64,000 nt of DNA from assembly GCA_015680685.1 (NCBI GenBank), contig MNCI01002737.1, forward strand, positions 128,078 through 192,077, read 5' to 3'. Below, piece by piece: positions 3,120-47,700 of the stretch (position 1 is the stretch's first letter; each line of letters opens with the position of its first letter). Made by a program: the position numbers and the translations under genes. The DNA is from Gnetum montanum (taxonomy: Eukaryota; Plantae; Gnetophyta). The notes under the pieces were generated by a model. It did not search any database. It was not told the DNA's origin and was given only the letters and a program-made list of their open reading frames with translations.

Positions 3120-4949
3120 NCTGCAAAATTTTGAAGTTTGACACTGGTTATGCTAGCTACGCTGGGGAGCATAACATAGACACTTAACCAAATTTTGACA
3201 AAATCTACAATCTTCCTAGGGCTTAACCCAAGTATGCTCTAGGGTGTAATAGGAGAGGTAGCCTCAAAAGTTGGGAAATGTGTCAAATATCTCTTCCATG
3301 TTGAGCTAGCTTGATAGATCATTGTCCAACACTTAAGCAAAACTAGGCACTAGAACCTGTGCTACGCTGGGGAGGGTAACAGAGCGTAGCAACCCAAGAG
3401 ATAGAAACTTTACTGAACTATTTTGTCCATCCCAAGCAGCTCTGACAACCTCTGGCATGGTACTTGGACGAATTGGCCACTAGGACATGTTATGCTGGCT
3501 ACACTAGGGAGCATAGCAAGCGTGACAACCTAGAAGATAGAAAATTTGCCAAACTGTTTCATCCATCCAAAGCAACCCTTAACCACTTCTGACTTGACAC
3601 TTGGGCAAACTGGCCATGGAAGTGTGTGCTACACTAACTATGCTAAGGAGTGTAGTAGGCAAATCCAGAGTGTAACAGGACACTTAGAAAAACTTTTCAT
3701 GCAACTCTTGTTGACACTTAGAAAAATCTTGCAAAACAAGCCTCAATATGTGCTACGCTAGAGAGTGTAACACCACACTATAAAAAAAATTTGCCGACAC
3801 TTAGACAAATTTGCTGTTGAAGACGCAAAAGCCTGAAATTGGTGGTGTTTCAATAATTTTTATGGATATAAGAAGAAAATAATAATAAACACTCTTGCAT
3901 TGCAATTCCTCTTGAGGATAATCATAATGCTCATGTCATAATCCCTCTTGGAAATAGATGTAACACCACTCACATAATGCAATAAAATGACTCTTAGTCA
4001 TAACCTTAATGGCCTAACACCGTGTCATATGATTACAACCTCCTTGGATAAGGAATGAATCATCGCAACTTGATCAAAATGAAAATTATATAAATGTTTT
4101 TGTTATTTTTTATGTTTAATACATCAACGGTAGAATAAGGAAAGACTATAAGTTTTATTCACTATGCAAACACTAAACTCTATCCGCATTAACCAAATGG
4201 TTTTAACAATGTAAGTAATGTAGTAAAGTCTAGTTGCACTTGTGAAAGTGATGACATAAAGTAGACACATAACAAGGAAAGGAATCAACTTACCCAAGAG
4301 AGGAAGAGCTCTTCACACAAACTAGACACCAAAAGCCAAAATGAAATTAAAGTTATAAAAATATTATGTGTGAGGGCTTAACCCAAGTATTTATAATTTT
4401 CACAAAGAAAGGAGATTTGTCAACGCCTAGGCATAAACAAAGGTCCATCAACATAGCCCAAGCCTATCCCAATCACACTACAGGCAAAGAAGGCTAAATC
4501 AGGTCTAGTAGGAGATGCATCAATGTCCTTACGTTGATGTAGGATAGTCAGCACCCCACTCCCCCAACACCCGTCCAAAATCACACTTTGTACATTGAAT
4601 CCCAGATGAATGCTGAAACCCATGAAAGCATGCCAGAAGGAACTTAGGACATACAAATAAAGCCAAAATCATCCTAAGGAGCTTAGAATCATGCACACAA
4701 CCTTGAAGTGTGGCACAAGGGACAAGGGCACATCTTGAGAGACCAAGAACCTTAACCAAACATGCTAGACTATAAACATAGGACACAAAACATTCCCCAA
4801 ATCCAAGTTTTATAATAGATATATGAAATGCCACTCAACGTGCCATTAGCAAATAGTTTAGACTTGCTTCCACTTACAAAGTGGCCACATAAGATTTATG
4901 CTAGAGTAGAAAGAAATTGAATGTATTCATTAAATATTTGGATTTTTAA

Positions 4950-7860
4950 TCATCCAACCCACCTTCTAGTTTTTTAACAACTTTTTTCCATATATTTGTA
5001 TAGGTCTTCATAGAGGTAGCCAGACCACTTTTAATTATGTTGATATTGTCGTCCTCTCCTATTCTATGAGAGGCTTCTCTTATTTTCATGATATCCAAGG
5101 AATTCACAGTGGATGAACTTTAGCACTTTCACTTCTTAGCATAGATTAGTGAAGGGCTCATCTACCAAAAGTTTTGCCTTTTGGACATTGGCTTGAGAAC
5201 CTCTAAATTCGGATTGGAAGGAAAACAATCATGGCTAATAAATGATGTTGCTACATTGTGCTTATCAATCCTTTCATGTCCAATATCCATGCAACCATGG
5301 CAAGAACACATACCATCAATTGTTTTGTTGTTTCGACACACAAATAATTGACGGTTATCTCGTAGTTCTCCACTGTCCAACTCTTTTTTATCGACATGTT
5401 GTTTGTCAAGCTGATTATAGTTTCTATGCCATCATTTTTGGACTCATTATAATCTTTAAAGGAACCTCCATTAGACCAGCATGTGGAAGCTGTACATGAT
5501 TAGACATTTGATATTCAAGCTTCGCCACATTTGCAATTGTTTGATCCAAACATGTATTTGCTGTTTCTGGGCTCCCTCATTTATCTGGGCTTAGTTTATG
5601 CCTCTCTTCCCCTAACGGATTACAACCTTCCTTGTTTAACCAAATTATAGTCTCTAATTCCTGATCCACAGTCTTCTTCCTTGCCCCAGTTTTGTTGATG
5701 TTCTGCAGACCTAAAATTTGTACCTGCTGCTAGGTTATCTCCCACAGATTCAGCCTGTTCAGTTCTTACTCTTTCTTCGCCTCTATACTCATAACCCACA
5801 ACAACAACATCCAGCTCGCTACTTGGCCTCTCTGAATGGCATTACATTTGCTTTGGATCTTCAGCTTGGACAATGTGTCTTTAAATTCTGTGCCTTCTTT
5901 GATGACATCATCTATCTCATTGGCTAGTGGCTTGATATCAACAATAGGAAAAATAGCTGGTAAATCTGAATCTGAATTAGGCAAGTTGTCTGTTACCATT
6001 TCAATGAGCTTTAAACTGTCATTATTAATACAGTGATCACTTTCATGTTTGTCCTTAACTCTTCCAAGTATGGATGTAAAAATGCCTTCAAATCCTCTTT
6101 GTCCTTAAGCTTTCTCATGACATTCGTTTCAGCTGCATCAGATGTAGCCTTCTGTGATTCCAGTGTGGCAAGGAGTGTTGTATAGGCAACTTGGTTAAGC
6201 CTGCCTTTCTCTTTGTACATAATACTCCTGTAATACAAAAGGATTGATTTTAGATGTTCCCTAAATTAGAGTATGAGTAATAATCACTACACAGAAATGT
6301 AACGTTAAAACATACCAATGCATGACATCTCTTATCATTTTCTCCAAGCAAGATTTGTATGATGCATGTGCTTCGGACCACGGTCTGGACTTTTCCACCT
6401 TCGTCTGCTTGATAAGAGCACATTCCATGGCTTCTATAGCTAAAAGTTGAGCCTCATTATACTCTTGTAGTTCTTCTTGTTTTAACATAGTTTCCTACTC
6501 CGTCACTTTTTTCAATCGTTGTTCTTTAACAAGAGATCTTGACAATGATGATTCCTGCAATATGAGTTGCTCATTTTTGTTTTCCTTGTCTTGTCGTTAG
6601 TTTCCTTTCATTTATCGGCACTGCGTATTCAATATAAAACCTGAAAAACAAAGGAAGAGAATGCCAATAAGATTTTAAGTTAGTGAAACACAGAATATGT
6701 ATCACAAATAATCTGTACCGGTACTCCAGCTCTTTAGAAATAAGAACCTATTTATAAAAGTACAAAATTCTTGCCTTGTCTTTGATTTGTACAGTAAATC
6801 AATTCTGAAATAATGGTTCATGTTCCTTGATTTCCTTCCAATTACCAGGCCCAAACATCAATACCCCACGTCCAAGGGCTTCTTCTTCTTCAGAGCTCCA
6901 TCATTTTCTAGCTGCGAAGCTGAAGAAATCATATGATTCAGTTTCTTTAGTAATTATTTACCCAACAAAAAATTTAAAAATAAATCAACGAAACGCAACT
7001 ACTATTAGTATAAGATGGAAATCATGGCAATGAAATTCGAAATGTATTTAGCGGAACTTACCAGGTATGGCGAGCCTGGATGAATTCATGGAGCATTTGT
7101 AATAAGGTACCTTAAATGGTTCCCCTACATTCTTTTGCACTCTTACCATGGCAGCTAGATCAACCCCTACCAAGCCTCTTTTCTCTCTAAACTGATGAGG
7201 CCACGAATGACACTATTAATGATATTTCATGCATAGGCTTGTCTTCCCCTGCATAAAACAACCAAAAAAATCACCTTTGCTTGAAAAGCAAAATTGACAA
7301 ATTTCGGCTTATGATAATGATAACGTCATAATGTAATAATTGACAGCATTCACAGTAAGCAACAGTTTTGTGCCTTACGATACAATAACACACTGAAAAT
7401 AATGGAACAATAGTTTCTGTTATTAATTATAAGAATACTAATTTCTAAGACTACCTGAAACAAGGATTCCTAGAGGCATGGCAGATCCCACCAAGGTACA
7501 AGAAACTCCAGTTTGTGTTTGCTTCCTCTGGTTTACTTGATATCACACTATTCTTAGGTTTGTCGGACTTGTAGGCCTCCTACCATCAAAATCAAACTAT
7601 GAAAACATCTGAAAGCAATTCCTTTTGCTAAAAAACCAAACTAGGCAAATGTAATTACAATTTTCTTTCATAATTCATAAATGAGATGGAAGAGCTTAGT
7701 GTTCATAATTGAATGTGGAAACCAAGGATTGACCTCCCAAGCAAGCAGAGGAGAAGCACCAGCATACTCGTACAATACATTTTCATACAGATCTATTCTA
7801 AACTTTTGACAATCAAAGCCTGTGTTCTGTAAATCATGAATGTGCAGCATGCTTGTTATT
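4950..7860 (-). pseudogene. Decayed multi-exon gene encoding a telobox/TRF-type Myb (SANT) domain followed by a helical, possibly coiled-coil, region
   Basis: Phase-consistent GT-AG exons 7608-7455, 7248-7062, 6911-6719, 6640-6316, 6227-. Exon 6911-6719 reads RK*WSSEEEEALGRGVLMFGPGNWKEIKEHEPLFQN*FTVQIKDKARIL (stops consistent with CGA>TGA). Outer limits approximate. Confidence 0.75.
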
Positions 7861-10800
7861 GCAGATATTTAAAACACAGTTATCTTATATTATCATTACT
7901 TTTAAATATAGAATTTCAAATCCCTTGATGTATGGAATTTACAGATGATATTGCTTTGGATGATTTCTTCCACATGTTAACAAACAATAATAATTCTGTT
8001 TGTGATGTTTTCAAAACTCATAACAGGTATACTTCTACTATCCAATAGATCCAAAGCTTCTAAGGACTCAATAAGGTTTTAGTTTCAATATTGCTTTTAA
8101 AATGGAAAAGTGAGACATCCTCCCAAATCAGAATGTTTACAAAATATATGCATATGTAATTTCAATAACAACATAAATGATGGTGAAATAGCAGTACCAA
8201 TTAGCTTAGATGGTTATAAGAAATAAAATTGATGTAGAATGACCACAATGCAAAAAGAAAATTACAGGAGAGTAACCAAGATTGTTATTTTATATGGTAC
8301 TAAATGTTGCACTGTAAAAACAGAGGCATGAATAACAAATTAATATGTTGAAACTACAATTGCGTAGATGATATTAATGTTACAAAAAGAGATAAATTGC
8401 ATATCATAGAAGATTAAATAATGGGCTTAATAAAAAAGATTGTTATATCACTATTCTAGGAAAACCAAAAAATACATGGAAAAATGACTGAAGATTATCT
8501 TAATAAATTATCAATAGATGGAGTCATAAAGGAGAAGAGTCCATTTTTTGGAAAAAGGTTAGAATGATGATGATGAGTGTTAGTTCTTGTGACATCTCGT
8601 TCCTGGATGTCATGGCAAATGTCAAATATACATTACATTCGACATTATGCATAAAGAAAATGATAAGGAAATGCAGAAGGAAAAATAAAAGAATGTTTTA
8701 TTAATGTGGAACAAAGTATATAGGTCATACCCTGAATGTTCCTTGAGGTTATCTTTTTTCGAAATTTATACCTTAAAAGCTATCCAACACTACCACCACA
8801 CTTAGGCCTAACCAAAAGGGATGGCCAATTGCCTTCTTATCCTACTTCACTTGGCACTTATTATTTGCCTTTACCAGCTCTACAACTCCATGACGATACA
8901 AACTGTAATGCCCAAGTATAGATACCTTAGGTCAAACTCCCAAAGGTCACCTCAAGACACATGTCTATTATCCAAGTCTTACTTACAACTTGTCCTTTCA
9001 GGTCTTTTTACAATAAACACAACATTTGTTATAAAGAGACACCATCTTTGTTATGCAGCAACACCATTCAGGAATGGGGATGTCACAGTTCTTTTATTTG
9101 CTTTTGTATATATACATGTGTGGTATTACCCCTATTTTATTGTAATACATGCCAAGTTGTATTGATGGATTGTAACACATAATTTCATTGCTTTCTTAGA
9201 TTATATTCATCATTTTGTTTTATTAGAAATTATATAAAGTTTATAAATAAACAAAAATAATTTTTCATAATGCCAACGTAGAATTGCATCTATATTGTGT
9301 GTTCTACAGTTTTATTTTAACTACTAGTTACCATTATGATAGATTGGACATGAATAAAAGATGTTTTCCCTTTAGCTTAGCTTAACCAACGATCTCTTAT
9401 TTCTTCATTCTAATTAAATTTTATTTTTTGTATTATGGCTTTTTGATAAGAGTTTGTCCTATTATTTTTGAATTTTATATTTACAAACAATCATTGTTTT
9501 TATGAAATGAAATGAAGCTTTATTACGTTTGAAGATCCATAGGATCTATTGGATAGATATTATATTTTCATGAAAAATAAAGATAGACTCTACAAATTGA
9601 TCAAGCACCAATGGAGGCATCAAAAAGAAATCATACAGGCTTTTTGCTGTAACATGGTAACATTGTCTCAAATGAGTAGTCATAGCACAAGAAAGAAACA
9701 CATGTAACTCATCTTCAAGGTCTCCTAATCTGCACAACCTACAAATGTGCTCAGGTGAGTTGAATTCATATTTTACTCTCAATTCTAGGATGATAAAAAC
9801 TTAAGAGAAGCTTGTTGATAGCATTTTAATACTTGATGGAAAAGATAGCTAAGAGATAGTGAGCTTTTACATCTAATTTATTAAATCTATTGTGGTGTAA
9901 ATGAAATTGCTTCTTACCTTCCACATTAGCCCACATGTATGTAAAAATATTTTGTTTGTCTTTATATTATACTGCTTTAAATTTATTTTAAATAATGAAA
10001 CTAAACTCTAATTGAAATTTTATGAGATCTGCCCAAATCTATTCAACAATAAAATTTCAAAAATATTGTTAAGAAAAAATACCAATGTTCTTTTTGTTAA
10101 CATGTGGAACAAAAAACCCAAAATTCCAATTTCAATATCCCACTTATATCTAACCTGCTCTAAGATATGATAGGAAAATATTGTATTCATCTTCAATGCT
10201 ATTTGTGTTTCACTCATAGTTAAGAGATTTATTCCTCACCAAAAAAAATTTTGAGCTTCCATTGTTAGCATAAATTCTAGGACAGGAGAAATGTTGTGGC
10301 TGACATTTGCCTGTACCCTATCCAGCATGGATGTTGAAAACCCATACTTGGAAGCATTACCAACCCTGGATCCATTGTCATGCATGAATGGCAATGAAAG
10401 AGATGGTATCTGGTGGACCACGAAGATCTTGCATTGGTTGCCCCTTCTTCTCAGTTGCATAACCATGCTGCTTTTGTCATTGTTATTTGCCTACTTTTTG
10501 ATCACATTGAAAACATTAGTCGACAGGGCAATAAAACTATCCATGAAGATATAATTTAGATGCCCTGAATCATAAAATTGAAGATAAGTATTCTAATAAT
10601 TAAATGAAAAAGATCACTTACAAAGGATTTCTATCAACCTAAGTACAACAGATCACGTATCACGAGATCATTGAGAAGTGAGCTATAACATATCCCTAGA
10701 TCATCATCAAATTTGGCTAATACATCAGCCATGGTACCCTCTCCAAATAGAAGATTCCAAAAAAGCTTGTCAAAAGATATATTGTGGTACATTTTGTATA

Positions 10801-11524
10801 GGGTGAATTGCATCATAATCAAATTAACCAACATAAGCCTTAAAATTTAACAATTGTGATCAAGGTCAAAATCCTAGAAGATATATTCTCTGAAAACAAA
10901 AATTAAGCATTGCCATTATAGTGGCAAATATAAACAAAGTTTCCAGAAGGATGTCACATCATGGACATTAGGGGGAGAATTCTAGGCATGTGAATGCCAC
11001 CACAAATCAGCTTGATAAGAGCAATTGCTACTACGATGACTAGAAATACAATAGCAATGCTACTGATTATGTTGAGTTGTATCTCAAAGAATCTAAGAAA
11101 CAAGGGCAAATTGAGTTCATATATATATCTAGTGATATTAAATCAAATTAATAATTTATTGAAAATCAATTTCTAATCTCAAAAATCTACAATTATTTTT
11201 TTTAGAAGAGTTCAGGTTTTATTATGAAGAAAATAAAAGAAATATTTACAAACAGGATCAGCATGCAAGCACCTCTCTGACAAACCCAATGTGTTCGCCA
11301 AGTGCCAACACCAACACAAAAACCTTCATCATATCACGCAATCTCTCCCACCCCAAAACAAGGTTTCAAGACCTTTCTAGACACATCTAGGCCTCGCACA
11401 AGCCTCCTACTACACAATCCCTACAAACCTGAATTTAGGAACCCCACAACAACAAATCACTAAAAAAAAACTCACACCCAACCATACAACCGAACTCACA
11501 TAGAACAATCTGCAATCGTTGCTA

Positions 11525-12628
11525 CTTCTCCCAATAGCCGCCTAAGCCAACCCCAGGCAATGATCCCTCCCAATCCTAAATTTCTGTCGTGCCCTACTAT
11601 GGCTTATCCATCCCCACTCATGATTCCCACTCCATCTTCGCACATATCTTCTCACACAAGTCATCATACATGAGTTGCAGTCTCATCATCTCTTGTTGTA
11701 GCCGGGCTTTGCAAATCAAACCCTGCAACTCTTCCCTTTGCCTCTCTGCCAAATTCACAGCCATTTGCAAGTCCTCCTCATGAGCTGCCCAACATGCCTC
11801 CCAAACCTTCCTTTCTGCTGCCCATGCTTACACAACCACCTCCCTACAAGCCCTCCACACCTCGCCCTCCACACCTCAACCAGTGGTAAGGACTCCTGCT
11901 CATGCCCCTCCCTTGCTTCATGCGACAAACTAGCCTCAACGGCCACCTCCTGGTCCTAGCCAAAACCCAACTTGATGCCCCCCTAAGAGTCCTAAAACCT
12001 CCACCATTGATAAACCAAAAAAGGCATTGAACTCACTGTTGACAACACTACCATACCATGTCACCAAAGAACCAAAACAAGTCCCAAATGTCTCCCCGAT
12101 CTTCACCGCAGGAGGGATTTAAAAAAAAAACTTGGCAAATTAACATGCACCCCATGGTTTAGGTAGTGTAGGAAAGCAAAGTGAACATCCATCAACTTTG
12201 ACATAGTTCTGGATTGGATGAGGAACCTATCAACCAACGTCGTTGATGTCTGCCATACTGATGGCAATGTAATTCTAGGCACATGACCACTAGCCATTTT
12301 TGACATTCTACCACAAAAAAAGTCACTCGTGTATGCATAGATGTTCATCACCAGTGAAATCTTTGCTCCCCCATTCAATACCCCCAATGCCTCTGCCACC
12401 ACCGATTTAATTAATAGAATTTTCTTTCCATGGAACATTGTCTCCTCCCCCTCCCAGTTCCTGAAAAAAGTGTCATTCGCAAGGTTTGGCACCCCATTGA
12501 TCTAGGGCAACAGTTCTACCCATCCAATCCATTGGATCAGCGTCCACAACTCATCATTTCCCTTAAAATCCTGCACTGCCAACTCTTGATATTGTTGCAG
12601 CCCCATACTATGTGCCACTTCCTCCCAT
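11525..12628 (-). pseudogene. Extra ORF3 inside the L1 LINE; resembles the plant-transposon accessory (Athila ORF / plant-mobile-domain-like) helical domain, with a coiled-coil tail
   Basis: ATG at 12628 (MGGSG...). Core ORF 12103..12492 FFRNWEGEETMFHGKKILLIKSVVAEALGV...LVDRFL...FLHYLNHGVHVNLPSFFFKSL. Lies between ORF2 and the poly(A), inside the TSDs. Domain name is inferred from by-eye similarity; 3' end approximate. Confidence 0.65.
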
Positions 12629-12699
12629 AGACGAAGCCCATCATTAACAGTAGCAAACGACAGCAATAGCCTTTATGCTCTGAAAATCAAATTGATGTG

Positions 12700-15600
12700 A
12701 TGTCTCCACACCACCCATAACATCGTAGTCGCCTTTTCACCACCATTTGATTAGACTAGTAGAGCTAGCCCAACTCCCCGCCAAGTGGCCAACATGTAAG
12801 CACATTGGTATAGCAAATGATTAATGGTTACATCCACCACCATGCATAACGAGCATTAGGGGTCAATGTCCAAACCTCTCTCCCTTAGGAATCCCCTTAC
12901 CGACAACACCCTATGCGCAATGAGCCACACGAACACCTTAATTTTCTTAGGTAACCTACCCTACCATATGGCCCTCCAGCCAATAATTAGCATGTACCTA
13001 TTTTGTATTATTTCTCTGGGTGCTTTGCCCAACAGTCCACACTCTCTCATCTAAGTGGCATGCTTACATAGCTCCACCTAGAACCGTGGGCCCCTTGACC
13101 CAACCTCCCACAACTGGTAGTTCCGCCTCACAATGTTGATCCACTGCTCATGTCACTCCCCTTGCTCCATCAGCCGATTGGCCAACCTCTGCAGCCACAA
13201 CAAAACTTCGTCATTAAAGGTCAGCAACCCAATTTCCCCAACATTCTTGGCTCTTGCTGTTTTTTCCCAACAAACAAGGTGGAGCTTCTCTCCTCCCTTA
13301 CCCCCCTAACCAAACAAAATGCTAGAGGATCTGGTCAATTTTTTGGATTACCCCCATTGGAGGACACACCGTGGAAGCCGTAAACCTTGCCATTGCCATC
13401 AACATAGACAAAGCTAAAAGAATTTTACCCTTTCTAGACAAAAAGCAATTAGTCCAATGTGCAGTCTTCCTTTCTAATTTCTAAACCAAAGCATTCCATG
13501 TTGGCCTCCTATTGCATTCAAACATTGACATCCCAAGATAGGAATCATGCAACATCCCTGGCAAGATACCCAACGTTTGGCAAATCCTACTCTTCACCTA
13601 CACTTATGTATTGACTAGGTGCAATGCCAACTTTGCCTTATTGACTTCCAACCCTAGCTCAATCTCCATCCACACTAGCACGTTTTAGAGCACCACTGCT
13701 TGAGGCATAGTTGCACGAGAAAAGACGATTGTGTCATCTACGTAGTGCTTTGCAATGCAATGCACCCCAACCACCATCACCACAAAAGCCATCCAACTCG
13801 TAGTACCCTTGCAACAAGTCCATCATCAGAATGAAGAACAAGGGTGATAGTAGGTCTCCCTAACGCAGCCCCCTTCTAGGTGCCTCAAAACCCTAAAGTT
13901 TGCCCTCAATATCAAACAAATATCTTACTAATGCCTAAATTTGAAGGCAACAATTCACAAATTCTAATGTAAATCCTTTTCACAGCATGATTGCCTACAG
14001 CACCTGCCCACTTACCGTATCATAAGCTTTCTTGATATCAAGCTTCACACACATCCCATGGAAGCCTGAAATCCAAAACAAATGTAGGATTTCCTATAAA
14101 AAGGATCACCTGATCCTATAGTAAATGGCCCTTTACAAATCTCACCTTATTTTCCATTACCAACTAAGGCATCAGTGGTGTTGGCGGTTGCACCAGCATC
14201 TTATTGAAAAGCTAGATAAAGGTATTACAAATTCCTATTGGTCGAAAATGCACTGGTAGAGATGGCATCTACATTTTTGGCACCAGAACAATCCGTGAAC
14301 AATTGATCTCCCAATGTACCTCCTACCATCCTAGCATACAGTTAAAAGCATCCAAAAAAATTTTGTTGATTATATCTATGAACTCCCTAAAGAATTTGAT
14401 GGGCCACCCATCAAGCCATGGCGTCTTGTTAGTCTTCATTGTGCCCATCGTTGTCTCCAGTTCCTGCAAAGTGAAAGGTATAAGTAGTGCATGATTTTCA
14501 ACAGTTCCAATAACCCGCTAAATCGGCACTGATAAAGGAGTAGTCTCTTTTCTACTACAAATATTATCCCAATACTATTGCACCAGCTTGGCAATCTTCT
14601 TCCCATCATTCGTAGCAACCCCTTCATGTAATAGTTGGAGTTTGTTTTTCTCCTACCCTCATTCCTTGGCCGACACAAATAAGAACCACATGTTTTTGCC
14701 CCCCTCCCTAAGCCAAGTGATTCTAGCTTGTTGCCTCCAGTAAACCTCCTCCTCCAACACTAGAGCCTGCAAATCCCTTAGCAATGTTTGTTCCTTTGCC
14801 GCCAGATCTTCTCTATGCTGCTACCTCGTCTAAACTTCTGTCAATCGTTGGAGCAACTGAGTATAGTAGGCACGAAAATCATATTTATCCACCACAGCCC
14901 TATCCTTAATCTACATCTTGAGCGTTTGCAATTCATGTTTTAGGAAATTTCTAGGCTCCTTCCCTTGAGAGTAATTTCACCAAATGTCCTACACAAGTGG
15001 TCTCAGCCATGGCTTAGTAAGCCACGTACATTTGAACCTAAATGGTCTAGAAGCCACCCCCTGGTTGTCCCACAAGTGGCACAAGATTGAGCTATGGTCG
15101 AAAGCCTACCTCTCTTTGCCTGTCACATGAATATCAAGACTAAGTACTAACCTCATACTTACCCACACATGATCAATCCGTGACTACATGCAATCTTTAC
15201 CTTTCCACCTGTTGCTCTACGTGAATCTACATCCATCCACCTCCATGTCCACTAGGTTATGCTCTTGAAGAAACTCCAATGATTCTTGGCTTCCCAAAGG
15301 AATAGTGCCCTCTCCTTCGATCTTTTCCCAAAGGAATCTCCTTCGATTCTTGGCTTCCCAAAGGAATAGAGACGCTAATTAAATTCCCCTATCAAAATCC
15401 AACCCTTTTTGTCTAGCACTATCGATGCAACACATTGTAATTCATGTAACTAGACCTCCCTATTCTATGCACCATACACATTTGTAAGCCAAAATTTTGC
15501 CTGGACCATATGGACCATTTGGCTCCAAGGAGACTCATCCACCACCACTACCAATGGTGTCCAAGACATAATGGTAAGCCCATCAACCTTGCCTCTGCAA

Positions 15601-15773
15601 GGCACCAACTACAACATCCAACCATTCCATTGTAGCAAACCAAATTCCGACTAGTGTAGCTTTGTCTCTTGTAAGCAGACAACTTCACATCCTTCACGCC
15701 GAACAATCTCCTTCAAGGTATTTCTTTTGCAGGGTGTACCCTAGCTTCTACAATTCCAGGATAATATCTTCAT
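12700..15773 (-). pseudogene. L1 ORF2 (AP endonuclease, reverse transcriptase, zf-RVT)
   Basis: Starts MKILSWNCR at 15773. xDH endonuclease end near 15095. RT motifs KLDIKKAYDTVS (about 14045), GLR*GDLLSPLFF (about 13870), HYVDDT (about 13745). zf-RVT WRAIW.GRLPKKIKVFVW...CSLC...INHLLYQC (about 12980-12780). Confidence 0.9.
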
Positions 15774-15789
15774 GGACAACCCGATGACC

Positions 15790-16950
15790 ATTTTTTGAAG
15801 ACCTCCCGCAAGGTCTTCTGAATCCCCAAGTCGATTTCCATTTGTGTCTATTTTCCTCTCACAACAGGTGTACTAGGATGCCCAACCTTTTCCCCTACCC
15901 CAGGTGATGCCAAAATAGTCCCCCCCCCCCAACCGCAACACCGATAGTGCAGTAGCTGGGTGCAACAATTTCAAACACTGGAGGTTTGGAAGACCCCTTG
16001 ACTACCAACACCCAACTCCCTAGAGGCAAGAGTTCCTGATCTAGCAATTCCAGCTATTTAGTGCTCCCTTACAACGTACAAGGGGACTACATGGGTGAGG
16101 CTCCACCCACAGGTTCCTAGTGTCATATCTCCTTAGCCACTAGCTTTGTGGGCTCTAGAACAAGATGCCCCTTCTATATTTGAAACCACCCTATCTCATT
16201 TGCTAGTTTTTCCTTAGGTTTTGCCATGATTTTGGCTTTCCTCTGAACTTTGCAGTTGGTAACCTAATGGCCTAGCTTTCAACCCATAAGTGGGTTCTCC
16301 AAGATTCTCATATTCTATCTGGATCTTCTCCTCATCGTCTAGAAAATTCAAGATCACTTCTCTTACCAAGTCGTTCAACGAGGGCGGCCTCCAAATGCAT
16401 AAACGCATGGAGCCCATCCTCGTCATGGAACTAGTAAATCGGTCAAGGGTAATGAAGTCACCAAAGAACCCTGCCAACGCTTTGAGAAAATCCAACATCC
16501 ACATCTCCCATGGGATCCCCAATGCCCTAATCCACACCAACACCTGGGCAAACAGGTCTTCTTCCTTGTGTGCACCCAACCTCCACCGTGTCAAAGCAAG
16601 ACCATGCACTCCATAAAACCAAGGTCCCTCGGCCAAAACCTGGTCACATTACTCAACAGATCAGTATATAAACAACAATAGATCCCCTAACATGCAACAA
16701 ACCCCAAAATCCCCCACTTTCTACGTGGTTTGTGCCCACTTTGCAACTAGATCCAACCTGGGCCTTACTCAACTAGACACAAATTTTTCAATGAGGCTTT
16801 GTTCCATTGTTTTCAGCCACTCTTCAGAACAGCTGCGCACCCAAAGCCTCATACTACCTTCCTACCGGGAGCAGGCCTCTATGCCCCCCGCTCTCAGCCT
16901 CCAACCCATCTCAGCAAGTGCACCCATCCCTAGGTCATCCCCCAAACTCC
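15790..16950 (-). pseudogene. L1 ORF1 (DUF4283 nucleic-acid-binding protein)
   Basis: VLAEGPWFYGVHGLALTRW...VWIRALGIPWEMW...LKALAGFFG...D..T is the typical plant L1 ORF1 motif set. Ends approximate. Confidence 0.85.
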
Positions 16951-17002
16951 AAATCAAATCATCAACACTACCTAGCCTCCCTTGCCCTCCTGCTCCTATA
17001 TT

Positions 17003-17203
17003 CCTGCACCCTGTGACTCCATCTCCCGCTCTTGTGTCTATGCTCATGCCCCCACCAATGTCTCCACCTGCACCCTACGACTCCATCTCCTGCTTCCACA
17101 CCCATGCTCATTCCCCCATCAACGTTTTTGCCTGCAACCTACGACTCCATCTCCCTCTCCCATGCTTGTGCTCATGCCCCCACCAACATCTTTGCCCGCA
17201 CCC
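17003..17203 (-). repeat. Three tandem 64-bp monomers at the L1 5' end
   Basis: CCTGCA(C/A)CCT..GACTCCATCTCC...GCTCAT.CCCC.A.CAA units start at 17003, 17067, 17131, with a partial copy at 17195. Confidence 0.85.
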
Positions 17204-17833
17204 ATGCCAGCACATTCACCTGCTCCTACTTCCACTCCTACTCCCACTCCCGCTCCTTCCATTTCAAAATCACTATTACCACCAACTTGTGTGAACCTTT
17301 GATTAAATCACCAAAAAATCTACAATTATGCTCAAGATAATGTTTCTCATAATATCATATAAGATGCTTAGCAACTTTTGTAGAAGTTTTGGTTACAAGT
17401 TAAAATGAAGAATTTTTTAATAATTAAATTTTGAAGCACAAGGAACCAACCAGTACACCAAACATAGTTGTTGAGCTCAACAAATTTGATCTCTTTTATA
17501 TACATATAAAAGGCCTAATTACTATATTTTAAACAATTTTTTTAAATTTTCTAGTAGAACTATTGAACTTATGAAGCAGGGTTCCTTTAGGCCAATTTAA
17601 AAATTCAAGGATTCAATTTTGTTCAACAAAATTCAAGAATAATGTTATTTTACATGAATTAAATCATGATCCTAAAACAAGTCTAGAGTGAAACGTGACT
17701 TTTCTCATCTTTTCTGAGGTTGTGCAAAGTTAGTAAAATCAATAGAATCAATCTTATTCTCATGACTATGAGCATGGAAGAATGGATAAACTAAATGAAC
17801 GTGTCAAGAATAAGGAAGAATGACTTCTAGGAC

Positions 17834-30419: not shown

Positions 30420-33400
30420 GTCCTTACATTCTAGGTAGTGAAGGCTCCTCCATTAGCTTCTTCCCCTTACCATGAAGCTTCTGAAATTGATACCTATTTA
30501 GAAGTGCCTGAAGCTTTTCTTCCTTCGTCCTGGGGTCATCTACTATCTATGTAGATTGTGTGATGTTGGATGAGTTGGTACATCCCAAAGGTATGGTAGT
30601 TGTGGGAACATTTTATTGTCCTTGATGTACCACACTGTGAATCGTCATCTTTCTTTTTCAAAGGCCCTAGCCATCTTTCTTAATTCCTGATAGTCTATCA
30701 TCTGGCACGCCAAGTTTATTGCAACATCCTTTTGTCCTTGGTATCTAACCTTCACAATTTCAAGTTTTGCAACTTTTGCAAGGCATCTTTTCAATCAACA
30801 AACTCTTTCTCATACATAGCATACATGATTACTACCTATTACTCAAGCTTGTTACAAGGTCCTCCTATTGCCAACATGGCTAGGTTAACATATTAAAGGG
30901 CAGCTAAACCCATGTACTTTGTCAAATCTTTAATCTGCAACTCTTTATTCTTTATCTTAGCCTAGTGGATGTAGGCTAACCTATCTATGATGGACTGCCA
31001 GTTTGGTGTTTGCACAGTGATGGAATAAATTTTGGCCTTTGCCATTTGGATTTCTTTTTCATCTATCTACTTGTACATTCCCACTTGGTCCCTAAAATGC
31101 TCCTTGAGCTTCTTATGCTCCTTGGCCTCATTCTGTAATGCGCTTATTTCAATAATAGACTTTTGGCAGATGGCATGTACTTCTTCCATTGATAAGATCC
31201 TATTTTCACAGACCGATCTATTCATGTACTAGTTGACACGAATGAATTATTCCTGTAGCTACTGAATGCTTTCTTTGAGAACATTATTTTGTTTCTCAAT
31301 GTTAATCAACCTAGTGTTAGCTACAGTAGGCTTTTTATTTTCCTCCTTGAGGGTAGTGAGAGCTTTGGCATGTGCATATGTTTGGGCTTCTGTTACTAAG
31401 GCATTCCACATGACCTTCTCTCTTTCCAACTCTACCTATATATTCTTGGCAATTAGCTACCTTACTTAATCAATTTTATATTGCTCAAGTTGTTCTTGGA
31501 TAACAAATCGTGTAGGGTCCCTTAGCTCTACTCTTAGAGCTGCCAATTCTTCCTATAGCCTTTGCACTTCAGTTTCAACGTGCTCTGCCCTTGTCCCTTC
31601 CACACTAACTTTCCTTTTGTGGATATTAAGTCAAACTACACTACAGTGATATCACTGGGGATATCAAAGAGATTCTGCATGACTTGGCTATTTTTTTGTA
31701 GTTTGTGGAGTACATTCTCATGTTCTACGGGTGTCATAGAGGTACTAACCAACATTCGAACATCTCTAGCTCCAAAAATATTAGTCAGTGACACAACAAG
31801 TGATGAGCGATGAGGTACCCCTACGCCTAACCATACAAATTACTAAGGCATTAAACTTGATTTGGTTGAATTTTGTGGACCTATAGTTATCTAATGCACT
31901 AGCTCTTCTAGGAAGTGAAATGAGTGTTGAGAACATTCATTGTCTTCCCAATTACACTTGTGAGGATCAAAGGTATGGTTTAAGTGTAATTAAGGTATAT
32001 GATTTTTCTTACTTTATATTTTATGGATTTGGTCACCTTTAATAAGAATGAAGAGTAGAGTAACTTAGAATCTAACTTGTTCACTACCTATTTAGCCTAA
32101 CACAAGTAACTGTCCCACTTTCTTGAACACATATAGCACTAATGGGCTACCAAACATTAAGTGTTGTTAGGTTACCAAGTACTATATGAATGCTCGAATT
32201 GGTTGTGCTCGTGTTCATTAACTACTAAAAGTAAATTGCTTAATTCAAATACATTAAAATAAAGAGCATGAAAGTAAAATACATTAAAGAGTTCATTAAG
32301 CTATTCTTGGTGCTGCAAGGATTGTCAAAAGAGTTCATTTTATTCCTGTCACACTGTTGTGCTTAGGTACATCAATGCTCAAACAAAGAACTGTACACAC
32401 TTAGACTCCTTCTGCGAGCACTCAGAAAATATTCTAACTCTGAGAAAAAGAAACGACAAAAGCTTCGCTACACTGACTAAGAATGATCAAAAACTAACTT
32501 GAAAACTGGAGCCTAGGCGTGGTATTATAAACTTGAGGTATACACCTTGATGTCGCATGTGCAACGTCAGAGCTAACATAAAATGTAACTCATCAACATT
32601 AAATGACTCCTTGATATGGTTAGTAATTACCTCCATTGCTCCTACTGAATCCTCATGTTGCATGATCACAACTGTAGCATCAACACTAGTTTCTAGCATC
32701 ACTTAGAAGGATGTAGTGTTTCCCAGTATCTGTTGTGCCTAGTCCTCTTCTTCTTCTACCTACAAAGATACCTGCTCAGTAGTAGGATCTATAGAAACTA
32801 TAGGCCTTATTGAGCTTTCTCTAACTATATACAAGTCTTAGCCTTCCCTTGCTCCCCAACTAATAGTGTCTATGATTTGATGCAGATGGGTATTTAAGGG
32901 ATGATATTCTTGTGGTGGTGATGGAGATTACTGCTTAGGTCTATCAAGTATAGGTGTTTGACCACTAGATCCTACTTATTGTTGTTGATTGGTAACTGGA
33001 ATGTTACCAACTAGTGTAGATCCTAAAGCACCCTTACTACTTGATGGCTTCTTTAGCTGATCTTTCTTAGATGGCACTAGCTTTGACATTTGTATGTAGG
33101 ATGCATTCTAGGCATTTCTTGGGGCATCATTGGTGTAGCCTAGGATCCTTCACTTGCTTGCATAGCTTCCTAATAAGATAAGGGAATGACAATGTTGATT
33201 TTCCTACCTCTTTCTCTTCAAATCACCTCTAAATCTCCAAGAAAAGTAAATGGACAATGCTAACATTGAATTTCCCCATCAAAATTGCACTTCCTCAGTC
33301 TACGTATGTGGAGATTCAATTGACCCCCTTCATTGGGAACAAGTGGTAGGTCCCAATCTTGAAATAAATTTCTTCTTCCACAATGAGCTTATTATAATCT

Positions 33401-33993
33401 TTATCTTCTTTCCCATAAACTCTATGTAGCCATAATTTCTTAGCATTAGTGTCAGACCTTGTGGAAATCTATGTAACATTGGCTCCTACATTTGGTATGT
33501 TCAAGGCCTTTGCCATTGCCTCAATTGAATATGACATTGAGACCCCTTCAATCTTTACTACGGCATCATCTTGTTTATTTTGCTAGAATTGGTAGACTTC
33601 TCCTAAGTACCATTCGACATTATTGGACAATGTTGGTCATAATGGAGATTCTTGAAGTTGTGTCTTAATAACTTCCAAAGAAAACTCTGTGAATGGGCCA
33701 AAGTTCAACTTCACAATGACCGTAGACATTATGGATTTTTCTTGAATGGCTTGGAAGTAGTCATTAGATAGCATGAGACACTATTCCTATTCAGGTGCTA
33801 CTAGTGCCTCTACTTCTACTTGGGTTGAATGTATAGTGGAAAGAGTTTACTAGTGGATGTTGAATGATTGAGCCTCTTGCTTTGCATGTTCAGCCTATGG
33901 AGTTTGTTCTCCTGCTTGGCCTCTCCCTCAACCTCTTGGTCTTTTGCTACCATGCTGTAAAGGTTCTTCTACTACTAGTCTCTTTGGAGCCAT
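30420..33993 (-). pseudogene. ORF3 (Athila env-like/accessory ORF) of element B with long coiled-coil C-terminus, interrupted by a solo LTR
   Basis: TACAG|ATG start at 33993 (MAPKR...). NNVEWYLGEVYQF...VVKIEGVSMSYSIEAMAKALNIPNVGANV...KIGTYHLFP...GKFNVSIVHLLFLEI is homologous to ORF3 of element A. 3' end approximate. Confidence 0.75.
31801..32595 (-). mobile_element. Solo LTR related to the element-A LTR, nested in ORF3 of element B
   Basis: Begins TGATGAGCG..AGGTACCCCTAC.CCTAACCATAC as at 40916 and 50932; ends ACTCATCA. Flanks ACAAG/ACATT are only a partial TSD match. Confidence 0.75.
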
Positions 33994-40994: not shown

Positions 40995-42584
40995 AGCAGC
41001 TCCGACTGGGTCGCAGTGATGTTGTCCGGAAGATCGAAGACATTTGAAAACAATTGCTCGGTTCCTACCAGTCGGTCCAACATTTCTTCATGTTGGGCTG
41101 CATTAATCCTACTACGTGAAGTTTTGACCGACACCTATACATCTTGTAGTCCATGGATGTTTGGTACAGGTGCTACCGGTGCATTAAGAATAGTAGCAAT
41201 TGTGTTAGCAACCACTTCAGCCATAACTTCTTATCCTTGGTACTGCATCACCAGGACCGTTGCCCCCTCACCATCTTCCAAGCATACCGAGAAAGTAGCA
41301 ACATTCCCTGAGATTTCAAGGAATAACTACTGGGTTGCAGTTGATACATCTCAAATGCTTGGATCTGTTCTAGTTAGAATGGGTGCTTGGGTGGCAAAAA
41401 ATATTAGCCCTGCCCTTTCAAGCAAGCTGATTGATTATGCCACTTGCTCCAGGTGGCTCATGGCAAGGCGATAGACCGAAGGATTGTCTCCTCCACCAGT
41501 TTTGCTAGATTGCTCTTGCTGACTCTAGAGCATTTCTCGGATCTCTCGAATGTATTCTACTGTTGTTTGCGAGCCCGACTGCATTGTTTTTTCAAGTGGT
41601 GGAGGTGGTTGCTGCTCTTCCTCTGTCTGTGTGGCGGCAAGAGTTTTTTCTTTCATCATTTCTCGTCACGAGGCAATTGGGATGCATCGGATGATGTCAT
41701 TAGAATATCATGTTATCCCTGCCTATTTGCACAACTTTCAGATTAGGTAGGGAAAGGGGAGAGCTCGTCTTCCACATTCGTTCTTTACGAACCTCTTTTC
41801 AATCTCCAAAAACAATAGCTATGGAAGACTCATGGGAAATTTCCCACTCAAGGTGGCACACGCACGAGCAGAGAAGGCAGTGATTTTGCTGGATCTTACT
41901 GTTGGATTCAGATGGTAAGACACTATCTTTGAATAGACTCTCTTTGCCATGGTCAAGGAGCCAAATTCCTTACGCTCTACCCCATAGCACCATCTAGTCC
42001 ATTGCGCCTTCACCTCTGGATTGGCCTATTTAGGAATTTCCACCACATCTGCCCCAGTTTCAAGCAACCCCAGAGCTTACGTTATTGCTTCTGAAGAGTA
42101 AGATACATAGATGTCTTTGATTCTTACTCTTGACCCTAGTTGCCGATTTGTCCAAAAGAGATATGTTTCTCCTAAGTACCACTCACCATTGGTTGTGATG
42201 ATTGACCACATCAGAGAGTTCTGCAATTGAAGCCTCACATCTTTTGGCATGTTCTCGAGGAATGGTCCAAATTTTAACTCTTGGAGTACCATCCGTTGCA
42301 TCTTGCATGGCATGATAAACATCAAGGCAGGCTTTGGTCAAGGTAACCTTAAGCCATGGTGCTATCCCAGGAGTCTCATCCCTTAGTGATTGCATGCCGA
42401 GAATCTCCTGTTTGGGAATCTAGTGAACAAACTCCACATCAGGTCGTTTGCAGAAGGGTCCAGTTGCATGAGAACCCTCCGCATACTCTGGCGGTTGCAC
42501 ACCTCATCCCCTTCTCGTACGTGGACACTTGTCCCTTAGTTGTGATGGTTCTTCGTCCCTTGGGTGCCTTGGTTTGAGTGCCAT
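40995..42584 (-). pseudogene. ORF3 (Athila env-like/accessory ORF) of element A, 3'-truncated
   Basis: TTTTTAG|ATG at 42584. ORFs 42077..42325 and 41819..42013 read NGEWYLGETYLFWTN...SYSSEAI and KIVSYHLNPTVRSSKI...GKFPMSLP. Confidence 0.8.
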
Positions 42585-44712: not shown

Positions 44713-47700
44713 TCACGTAAAGGTTTGAGTTGTTGGTGGTTGACCAACTATGTTCTGGTGGGATCCCCAGGTTTGTGAATGAGCAAGGCCCCGGATGGGA
44801 AGGTTTCGGAGACAATAAAATGTCCCTCCCATAGTGTCTGAAACTTTGTTGGTTGGGATACATGTGAGGGATTCCAATACAATACCTTGTCTCCACATCG
44901 AAATGTGACCTTCTGGATCCTAAGATCATGACGTTTCTTGTTATAGGCCTTGTGGGTTTCTTTGGAAGATAGGGCCACTAATTGGTTCTCATCTAGCATA
45001 CTTAAATTGATTAATTGTTCTCATTGTGCTAGCAATAGGTCAAGACCGAGGTCACAGGCAGTGGATAGTGTCCAGAGTTCTGCTTGGATTAGAAGTGTTG
45101 GCAACTTTCCGTACACTAACTCATAGGGAGAGTACCCTACAGGAAGTTTCCAAGTGGAGCGATAGGCCCATAAGGCATCGTTGAGCTTGGTACTCCAATC
45201 CCTCCTGTATTTGCTAATTGTTCATGTAAGGATCTTGGTGATTTCCCTATTTGTGACTTCAGCCTACCCGTTGGCTTGGGGGTGATAAGGTGTTGTGAAT
45301 TTATGTGTTACCCCTAAGCATTACATGAGTTTTCGAAAAGTGACCCCATGAAGTGAGTCCCATTATTAGAAATGAGTGCGCAAGGCACTCCAAACCTGGT
45401 AATGATTTGTTGTTGGACAAATTGTGCGGCGTTGTTGGAAGAACAGTCGATGATGGCTGTTGCGTCTGCCCACTTTATACAGTAGTCCACCACCACGATG
45501 ATGTATGCATTTCCATTTGATAAGGGGATGATGGGCTCCATGAAGTCGATACCACAGATGTCGAAGGGCTCTAGTGGCTGAATCCACTGTTGAGGTCCCT
45601 CCAACTGGGCCATCATCCCACCATCTCTTTGGCATCGTTCGCAGGAGCAGGCGAACCATTGTGCATCCCTGAAGAGTGTAGGCCAATAATACCCTGCAAG
45701 CAGGATTTTAATGGTCGTTCTACATCCAGCATAGTGGCCTCCACAAGGGCCCTCGTGAGCATCTTAGAGGACGTGCAGTGTATTAGCATCAGGGACACAC
45801 CATCGAACCAAGCCATCTGTGCACACCTTGTAGAGGTGGCCATTGATTTCCATGAAATGCTTGGCCTTATGGAGAAACTATTGTTTCTGTTGATGGTTCC
45901 ATTCTTTTGGCAACTCCTGGGTTGTAAGGTAGGTGAGGATGCGGTTGAACCAAGGAGATTCCTTGGGTGCTTGAGGATCAACAGTGCTTGTGAAGAAGAG
46001 TTCATCTGGAAACTGATCAAATAAAGGCTCCTCCTCTTTTGCATCATCCCATCATAACCAAGACAAGTGGTTAGCGACCACATTCTCAAACCTCTTTCTA
46101 TCTACCATGGTCATATCAAACTCTTGAAGAATCACCAACCACCGAATTATGCGGGGGCTCACCGTTGGTTTGTTCATTAGGAACTGTATAACACTATGGT
46201 CTGTGTGCACAAACACCTCGTATCTGAGCACATAGTGTCAGAATTTATCTAATGCGAAAACCACCACCATCAATTCTTTCTCGGTGGTGGTATAGTTCAG
46301 CTTTTGCACCCACGATGCTACGGCTTGCACAGTGGATATAATATGGACGTTTCTGATCATCACACTATGTAAGCATGGCTCCCAAGGCATAGTTGGAGAC
46401 ATCCGTCATAATGTGAAAGGGTCTGGACCAATCAGGTGCCCTTAGAACTGGAGCTTCTATGAGTTTTTGCTTTAGCTCTTGGAATGCAGAGTCGCATTCC
46501 TTGGTCCAGATGAACGGAGCGTACTTCTTTGTAAGCTCTACCAACGATCGAGCTATCTTCGAGAAGTGCTCAATGAAGCGCCGATAGTAACCAGTGTGTC
46601 CAAGGAATGACAATACATCTTTGATAGTACTTGGTTGATGAGTAATTCCTTGGATGACCCTAATCTTTTCAGGGTCTACGTTGATCCCTATTGATGAAAT
46701 GCGATGCCTTAGCACAATGCCCTCTTGGACCATCAGATGGCTCTTTTGCTAATTGAGCCGCAGATTAGTGTCTACACACCTCTTTAGGACTTGCTCTAAG
46801 CAGTCCAAAGCTTGCTCGAACGTGGCACCATAGGTGGAGAAGTCATCCATGAAGACTTCCACACCATTGTTGATTTGTTGCTGGAAGATGCTTAGGACAA
46901 CGCGTTGGAACGTCGCAGGCGCATTGCATAGGCCAAAGGGCATCTTCTTATATGCAAAAGTCCCTCATGGACTTGTGAAAGTAGCTTTGGCCTGGTCCTC
47001 TAGTGCTATTTGGATTTGGTTATAACCACTATAACCATCCAAAAAACTGTAATATTGGTGTCCTGCGATTGTGTCCAACACCTGGTCCACAAATGGGAGC
47101 GGGAAGTGGTCCTTGAAAGTTGCCATGTTGAGCAACTAGAAATCAATACAAACTCTCCACTTACCACCTTTCTTGGATACGATAACGAGTGGGCTAACCC
47201 ATTCGCTATCAACAACAAAATAGATGAATCCTGCCTTAAGTAGTTGTTCGATTTCATCTTTTACAACCTGTTTCAATTTGGGATTCAACCGTTGTTGTGG
47301 CTATCTTCGTGGATTTATGAAAGGGTTAAGGTAGATCCAGTGCTGGCAGATCCTAGGATCAACGTCAATTAGCTCAGGATAGGACCACGGGAATGCAGCA
47401 ACCCATTTGTTTGCCATCACCAACAACTTCTTTTTCTGTTCAGAAGCAAGGGTAGCATTGATAATTACCAGCTTGCCATTTTGCAAGAATGCATACTCTA
47501 AGTGAGCCGATAGGGATTTTAGCTCAAGGGGCTCTTGCTTGAAGCTCTCAGGGATCTCTAGCTTTCCCCAGTCATCTAGGTCATCAACGATGGAGGTCTA
47601 TTGATGAATCTCCTCCATCACATCCATGCTATCAATATAGGCTTGCACTAGCCCCTCAGACGGTTCCATGCATAATGTGTTGCTAGCAGGATCAGCTGTC

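Follow-up and report, generated by a model that had tools for sequence, protein, structure and literature searches.

An inherited module, probably part of ORF2, in a plant L1-type LINE and its probable kinship with an accessory domain of Athila-like gypsy elements

Background

The ORF2 of plant LINEs has the anatomy APE-RT-zf-RVT, with or without an RNase H domain. In a heavily decayed LINE of Gnetum montanum, a long stretch of apparently coding sequence lies between the zf-RVT region and the A-tail. A first-pass annotation of the window (the whole 64,000-nucleotide stretch of DNA analysed here) had interpreted this stretch as a third ORF, aligned it by eye with the accessory ORF3 of two gypsy elements in the same window, and suggested that a single accessory domain is common to LTR and non-LTR retrotransposons. 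A further inherited module would extend the known anatomy of plant LINE ORF2. Moreover, if the kinship with an Athila-type protein were true, it would link two unrelated classes of retrotransposons via one accessory protein, which could then be approached from both sides. Full-text literature searches turned up plant L1 elements with RNase H, accessory ORFs of plant LTR elements and an insect R1 LINE with an added helicase, and no LINE with the present module, hereafter termed domain X.

Several issues are hence at stake: 1) whether the tail was part of the LINE when it inserted; 2) whether domain X is a heritable feature of LINEs or an accident of a single copy; 3) whether it constitutes an ORF of its own or a part of ORF2; and 4) whether it is related to the accessory ORFs of gypsy elements. 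What is new here is a second element, from outside the window, that bears RNase H alongside domain X. Kinship with the gypsy ORFs gains a moderate degree of quantitative support, and the interpretation shifts from a third ORF to an extension of ORF2.

Results and Discussion

Anatomy of the LINE

The element is full-length and bounded by exact target-site duplications of 16 bp (Table 1), a 16-mer found twice in the window against zero occurrences expected by chance. Its assignment to the L1 clade of plant LINEs follows from three features: the duplications together with a 3' poly(A) and the absence of LTRs, an ORF1 with the DUF4283 domain, and an RT followed by a zf-RVT. Among the ORF1 domains of plant L1 elements, DUF4283 predominates (PMC5203782).

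Table 1. Features of the LINE and of the gypsy comparators in the window; L001 is the metagenome contig that carries the second LINE with domain X.
Feature	Position	Strand	Evidence and remarks
L1-type LINE, full-length, heavily decayed, ~6.1 kb	11197..17313	-	duplications, DUF4283 ORF1, zf-RVT, RT collinear with L001, GC skew
5' target-site duplication ATAATTGTAGATTTTT	17314..17329	-	exact 16-mer
ORF1 remnant, DUF4283	16217..16648	-	Pfam PF14111, E 1.1e-13, 51 bits (cut-off 27)
RT remnant with YVDD motif	13607..13822	-	piece 13822-13688 reads ...HYVDDTIVF...; tblastx to L001 RT
zf-RVT, two pieces split by one stop	12754..12960	-	PF13966, consecutive, one frame
Linker zf-RVT to domain X, in zf-RVT frame, two in-frame stops	12502..12753	-	translation; no Pfam match on 12672-12505
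Domain X core (132-codon open stretch)	12106..12501	-	phmmer, tblastx, hhalign
Mid-tail, frame-shifted remnants	11621..12105	-	includes 69-codon charged, helical-looking piece 11827-11621
Tail end / 3' UTR	11204..11620	-	AATAAA at 11223-11218
A-tail, short: 7 A + first A of duplication	11197..11203	-	sequence; adjoins 3' duplication
3' target-site duplication ATAATTGTAGATTTTT	11181..11196	-	exact 16-mer
Accessory ORF remnant, gypsy element A	41528..42337	-	RT + integrase remnants upstream, same strand; comparator
Accessory ORF remnant, gypsy element B	33130..33780	-	comparator; faint PF20167 match

The copy is dead: stops or frameshifts interrupt it at intervals of roughly 45-60 codons, and its ORF2 is so badly decayed that the open pieces mostly span 35-65 codons. 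Single pieces of the RT are too short for Pfam; the segment 13750-13607 pairs with positions 470-613 of L001 in tblastx at relaxed thresholds (E 0.001), and this pairing is collinear with that of domain X in the two LINEs. The two zf-RVT pieces, 12960-12859 and 12855-12754, correspond to profile positions 28-58 and 61-85 (Pfam E 0.0017 and 0.0044), the decay leaving each of them short of the gathering score. In the N-terminal region of ORF2, where the APE-type endonuclease would be expected, the pieces 15712-15551 and 15608-15468, which are too short and decayed, recovered no Pfam family. The window contains no second copy of the LINE.

The tail as part of the element

The sequence downstream of the zf-RVT runs from 12753 to 11197 on the sense strand of the LINE, about 1.56 kb in all. 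The first-pass annotation had correctly placed it between zf-RVT and poly(A) and inside the 16-bp duplications, both of which prove to be exact; its estimate of ~1.1 kb was too short, and the lower bound of 11525 on which it relied was arbitrary. The longest open stretch of the tail is domain X, whose conserved part extends from ~12468 to 12106 (about 120 amino acids), and the LINE peptides that had been quoted for it are indeed encoded by the minus-strand ORF 12492-12103. Past domain X the window copy shifts frame into a charged piece of 69 codons, followed by short pieces up to the A-tail. None of the tail pieces, from either the window LINE or L001, belongs to a family recognized by Pfam.

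Nucleotide composition is informative regarding the provenance of the tail. The sense-strand GC skew amounts to +0.42 across ORF1 and the 5' UTR, +0.29 in ORF2 and +0.18 in domain X, and the remainder of the tail reaches +0.50 and +0.48; in both flanks of the LINE the skew is about zero, such that the excess of G over C ends at the duplications. The accessory ORFs of the gypsy elements have a skew of only +0.04 and +0.10. The tail was part of the LINE at the time of insertion, because it lies inside the exact duplications, has an AATAAA and an A-tail at its end, and retains LINE-type skew throughout. Using the G-rich skew (+0.50) as a guide, we infer that the mid-tail is of coding origin.

A J-domain (DnaJ, PF00226, with its HPD motif) was also sought in the tails of the window LINE and L001, and was detected in neither by Pfam or by phmmer against PDB; likewise, the J-domain of E. 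coli DnaJ (NC_000913) has no detectable similarity to the window tail or to L001. The best trace of such a domain, at 8883-8948 of L001, is non-significant and has KKD in place of HPD.

A second, highly divergent LINE with domain X

A phmmer search with domain X against 1.84 billion proteins recovered a single match (E 4.9e-5, 26% identity over 117 amino acids). This protein, P0001, comprises 129 amino acids, originates from a single 2.7-kb Logan contig, and was predicted by the gene caller as a stand-alone polypeptide. When metagenomes were scanned with the alignment of these two X sequences (A1), the search uncovered contig Ga0181464_1000194 (L001), which encodes the P0001 protein at 7923-8357. 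The alignment of X from the window with P0001/L001 contains 31 invariant columns at ~25% identity.

The context of this homologue is that of a LINE. Upstream of X and on the same strand, L001 carries an RT remnant (383-649), a zf-RVT (4479-4649, E 5.9e-9) and a C-terminal part of an RNase H domain duplicated in tandem, with positions 88-122 of the RVT_3 profile matched twice (E 0.018 and 0.0074). A single frame with only three stops then spans 7242-8864, and encompasses the end of the RNase H, a linker of 137 codons, X and 169 further codons. In a tblastx comparison of the window LINE with L001, X is the strongest match (8001-8354, E 3.9e-9). RT and X are collinear in the two elements and have diverged to about the same extent; at the DNA level L001 shows no similarity to the window, and beyond X the tails share no similarity detectable by tblastx.

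Thus, L001 possesses both RNase H and X, whereas the window LINE possesses X without RNase H, its linker between zf-RVT and X (84 codons) being too short for an RNase H domain given the 123 positions of the RVT_3 profile. Since L001 carries both domains, X is an addition rather than simply a replacement for RNase H. The presence of a homologue at the same position of a very divergent LINE argues that X is heritable. Taken together, these comparisons of translated sequences show domain X to be an inherited LINE module that is conserved at the protein level and resides in a transcribed, retrotransposed unit; L001 likewise shows that the module is old and that its presence does not depend on RNase H having been lost.

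Domain X has otherwise almost no database relatives. Word-index protein searches with X alone, with the X alignment and with an 86-amino acid gypsy piece returned only P0001 or nothing, and word searches with the gypsy accessory ORFs found no database relatives. There were no matches of X or the gypsy pieces in viral contigs, none in a scan of bacterial and archaeal genomes, and none of the X profile among PDB sequences.

Reading frame and termini of domain X

In the window LINE, X is in the same frame as zf-RVT (the pieces beginning at 12960 and 12501 are offset by 459 bases), and the X of L001 shares the frame of the RNase H end. Neither of these decayed copies has an ATG ahead of the conserved part of X: the first methionine of the window piece lies within the conserved block, and P0001 begins at a valine codon that was recoded as 'M'. 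Stops intervene between zf-RVT and X in the window (12675-12673 and 12504-12502), and also between RNase H and X in L001; the density of stops in the window linker is about that of the decayed ORF2 itself. At the other end of X the stops of the two copies (12105-12103 in the window, 8355-8357 in L001) lie no more than two codons from a common alignment position, and this could represent a real end of the ORF.

Relationship to the accessory ORFs of gypsy elements

The gypsy peptides quoted in the first-pass annotation are present on the minus strand, starting at 42160, 42076, 41926 and 41851. For the comparisons the gypsy ORFs were read through with the letter X at each stop, with no mending and no building of a consensus. 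Conventional searches remained blank: the LINE tail has no DNA similarity to the gypsy ORFs within the window, the 129-amino acid X ORF gave no tblastn match on them even at E 100, and two-sequence HMMER profiles of X and of the gypsy ORFs did not cross-match. A weak tblastn match elsewhere in the window, at 7722-7877(+) with E 0.076, is gapped and not shared by the X of L001, and was set aside as chance.

Profile-profile comparison yielded a different picture. In hhalign the X pair aligned with the gypsy pair over 42 columns (P 3.3e-4, probability 38%) in the very register that had been proposed by eye for the first block; these figures rest on two-sequence profiles and on that one block, with the elements and comparators all broken. 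The X of L001 alone found the same gypsy block (P 0.0025), and the alignment cut to the window columns gave a block score of 26.3 (P 0.0023), which was reached by none of 300 column shuffles (mean 12.6, sd 2.4, maximum 20.6; z about 5.6). In global mode the score was 18.0 against 3.0 +/- 2.1 for shuffles, and in soft-gap global mode 44.0 against 11.6 +/- 4.0, with none of 200 shuffles reaching the observed value in either case; z was 7-8 across the global modes, for which the domain borders had been chosen after the local alignment was seen.

Controls for single sequences consisted of 80 windows of 122 amino acids drawn from five real proteins of the window, which are small sets. The local scores were 26.0 for the L001 X and 19.4 for the window X (controls 11.6 +/- 1.9, maximum 14.7), and the soft-gap global scores were 43.8 and 24.2 (controls 10.1 +/- 4.4, maximum 20.1). 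In default global mode the L001 X scored 13.5 and the window X failed, its score of 1.0 being at background (controls 3.1 +/- 2.2, maximum 10.2). Beyond the first block the aligner chose a register in which VHFAFL lies opposite (V)HLLFL and NLPSFFFKSL opposite LPFPYLIxKL, a pairing without significance by itself (P 0.08); when X was extended over the frameshift at 12105, with the break written as the letter X, the hhalign score did not rise. Of the two blocks aligned by eye, the first is accordingly upheld by hhalign and the shuffles, while the register of the second was not recovered and BLAST and HMMER detect neither. In sum, X compared with the accessory ORFs of the window beats all shuffles and the local and soft-gap controls, with BLAST and HMMER blank and an hhalign probability of 38%.

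Known families provide a further point of comparison. The Transposase_32 domain (PF20167) is located in the 3' accessory ORF of Athila and is related to ATHILA ORF-1 (PF03078) (PMC11728184). Within the window, the piece 33222-33130 of gypsy element B has a faint match to PF20167 (E 0.18) over profile positions 158-174 of 177, the expected C-terminal part, and this was the sole Pfam match obtained with the gypsy accessory pieces. Neither the window X nor that of L001 matched PF20167, PF03078 or any other Pfam family at E values up to 10, and both fall short of the PF20167 gathering score of 45 bits. Among protein language-model neighbours of X, clusters of PF20167 account for 16 of 30 matches at 0.91 and 17 of 30 at 0.93, and the L001 X shares 172 of 256 language-model features with PF20167; ATHILA ORF-1 scores 0.87 and 0.91 for the two X. 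Such neighbours serve as leads only; for one third of shuffled proteins, too, the top matches are family-consistent. An AF2 model of the two-sequence X alignment reached a pLDDT of 44 and is unusable as evidence for the fold.

Because hhalign with its controls and the language-model neighbours agree, we consider X to be probably a distant homologue of the Transposase_32/ATHILA-type domain that Athila-like gypsy elements encode in their 3' accessory ORFs. For purposes of classification it is filed as a possible distant relative of Transposase_32 and not as a member. The proposal that an accessory domain is common to LTR and non-LTR elements is thus probable and unproven, with hhalign and the language model in its favor and the absence of Pfam matches to E 10 against it.

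Alternative explanations

One alternative would be a one-off event confined to this copy, either a 3' transduction or a template switch onto a gypsy/Athila transcript, and the segment does sit where transduced sequence would, between the last recognized ORF2 domain and the poly(A). However, the homologous domain at the same position of the independent element L001 contradicts a 3' transduction, which the first-pass annotation had itself named as a refutation of its proposal. Likewise, the G-rich skew typical of the LINE continues through the tail, unlike the composition of the gypsy ORFs, to which the segment shows no DNA or BLAST-level protein similarity. For practical purposes these comparisons exclude both a lone 3' transduction and a recent capture from a gypsy transcript. 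Another alternative, and the one that the earlier interpretation had adopted, is that X forms a third ORF that initiates its own translation, like the 3' accessory ORFs of Athila. The stops that part it from zf-RVT in the window and from RNase H in L001, the nearly coincident stop at its end in both copies, and the treatment of P0001 by the gene caller as a stand-alone protein of 129 amino acids would all fit such an ORF. Yet the stops of the window linker are no denser than those of the decayed ORF2, in both elements X shares its frame with the ORF2 domain that precedes it, and neither copy offers a conserved start codon, the apparent start of P0001 being the recoded valine; a third ORF is hence quite improbable. 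X being in the ORF2 frame and lacking a start codon of its own, it is more likely a C-terminal extension of ORF2, a reading that rests on two decayed copies in which frame continuity is weak evidence of fusion.

Even with the tail accepted as a true extension of ORF2, X might be an orphan domain specific to LINEs, its likeness to gypsy ORFs and Transposase_32 arising from chance or from a shared pattern of secondary structure. The silence of Pfam to E 10 and the lack of any BLAST or HMMER cross-match are in keeping with this, as are the hhalign probability of 38% resting on one block (P 0.08 for the second), the background score of the window X in default global mode, and the family-consistent matches obtained with a third of shuffled proteins. 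Set against it, the two X, which are only 25% identical to each other, both align to the same gypsy block; both score above all shuffles and all controls from real proteins in the local and soft-gap global modes; and PF20167 is the commonest named neighbour of each X independently, with the extensive feature sharing of the L001 X in addition. We therefore regard an orphan origin as rather unlikely. The joint reading, in which the tail is the decayed ORF2 C-terminus of a plant L1-clade LINE and X is a Transposase_32/ATHILA homologue, is favored by us to a moderate degree.

Comparison with known systems and functional implications

The closest structural parallel among plant elements is the addition of RNase H (RVT_3) at the end of ORF2 in plant L1 LINEs (Smyshlyaev et al. 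2013, as summarised in PMC5203782). These elements resemble those described here in belonging to the L1 clade, in having a DUF4283 ORF1 and an RT with zf-RVT, and in carrying an extra domain at the ORF2 C-terminus; in L001 the X tail comes after just such an RNase H. They differ in that the 84 codons between zf-RVT and X of the window LINE cannot accommodate an RNase H, and in that X does not look enzymatic and comes with about 300 further codons.

The Athila 3' accessory ORF with PF20167 (PMC11728184) resembles X in size and in a collinear series of motifs: a V-x-V/I-x-G strand pair, then ...ALG-x-L-x-x-G, next H-x-x-FL, and finally LP-x-x-L-x-x-L. In contrast to that ORF, X resides in a non-LTR element, is apparently fused to ORF2, and remains below the Pfam threshold.

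The mechanism may be sketched as follows. X would be translated as part of the ORF2 polyprotein, with a charged helical spacer after it, and would act in cis on the ribonucleoprotein of the LINE itself. Because X gives no enzyme-like profile match and its possible relatives are accessory proteins, it may be a non-catalytic binding or adaptor domain that aids the retrotransposition complex. The step that it might serve in both classes of elements could be nuclear entry, contact with nucleic acid or chromatin, or the handling of host silencing. The modulation of silencing put forward by the first-pass annotation is possible, and found no support here: X has no Pfam match to the plant mobile domain (PF10536), which is also absent among its named language-model neighbours, and the likeness to the MAIN/MAIL1 proteins that bear this domain is restricted to the suggested role of TE-derived accessory domains in silencing.

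A stronger proposition is that an old group of plant L1 elements keeps, at the end of ORF2, an X truly homologous to Transposase_32/ATHILA, and that the domain has been selected in at least two layouts, with and without RNase H; in our estimate, the case for this is evenly balanced. If it were true, a module would have been exchanged between non-LTR and LTR retrotransposons, and this would point to a function that both kinds of plant retroelement require. Insect R1 LINEs offer a precedent, one in which a LINE lineage acquired an SF1 helicase domain at the ORF2 C-terminus and kept it (PMC4686597); it differs from the present case in LINE clade, host kingdom, type of domain and likely donor, a virus in the case of R1.

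The end of domain X and its surroundings

In both copies of domain X, the open stretch that lies 3' of the zf-RVT in the LINE of the window and is also found in the divergent LINE of the metagenome contig Ga0181464_1000194 (L001), the terminal stop codons fall no more than 2 codons apart by alignment column. In L001 the frame stays open for a further 169 codons past this stop. The shared position could be a coincidence, the true end of the ORF, or a read-through stop.

Upstream in L001, the RNase H domain carries a tandem duplication of its C-terminal end; each of the two copies matches RVT_3 profile positions 88-122, and domain X is in frame with the second. Two stretches of unrelated sequence, probably nested insertions, further split the L001 LINE. 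Both strands of these interruptions hold recurrent short peptide repeats of SKSHNYDFLRHAP type, which are found again farther downstream in the contig.

Repeats and other transposons in the window

The 5' end of the LINE of the window is a G-rich stretch with imperfect repeats, whose translation yields Gly/Val/Met-rich peptides upstream of the DUF4283 domain; spurious Pro-rich ORFs of 100-200 aa occupy the opposite strand. A direct repeat is also present in the endonuclease region. Within gypsy element A, a Ty3/gypsy remnant, the gag/protease-like frame is far better preserved than the accessory ORF. The least decayed transposon of the window, by a wide margin, is a Ty1/copia element with two long open frames, corresponding to gag-protease and integrase.

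Coordinates of the features in the window and in L001
Feature	Sequence	Position	Strand	Detail
Domain X stop	window	12103-12105
Domain X stop	L001	8355-8357
RNase H C-terminal duplication	L001	7002-7500		unit ~240 bp
Interruption, RT/pre-zf-RVT region to zf-RVT	L001	1376-4370		~3 kb
Interruption, zf-RVT to RNase H	L001	4900-6690		~1.8 kb
Further peptide repeats	L001	11000-12800
LINE G-rich 5' stretch	window	16860-17310	-
Repeat pair in 5' stretch	window	17003-17075, 17131-17203		78% identity
LINE endonuclease direct repeat	window	15270-15369	-	36 bp, 89% identical, copies 64 bp apart
Gypsy A gag/protease-like frame	window	47598-48824	-	408 aa
Gypsy A accessory ORF	window	42337-41528	-
Ty1/copia element	window	56764-58753	-	frames of 358 and 308 aa
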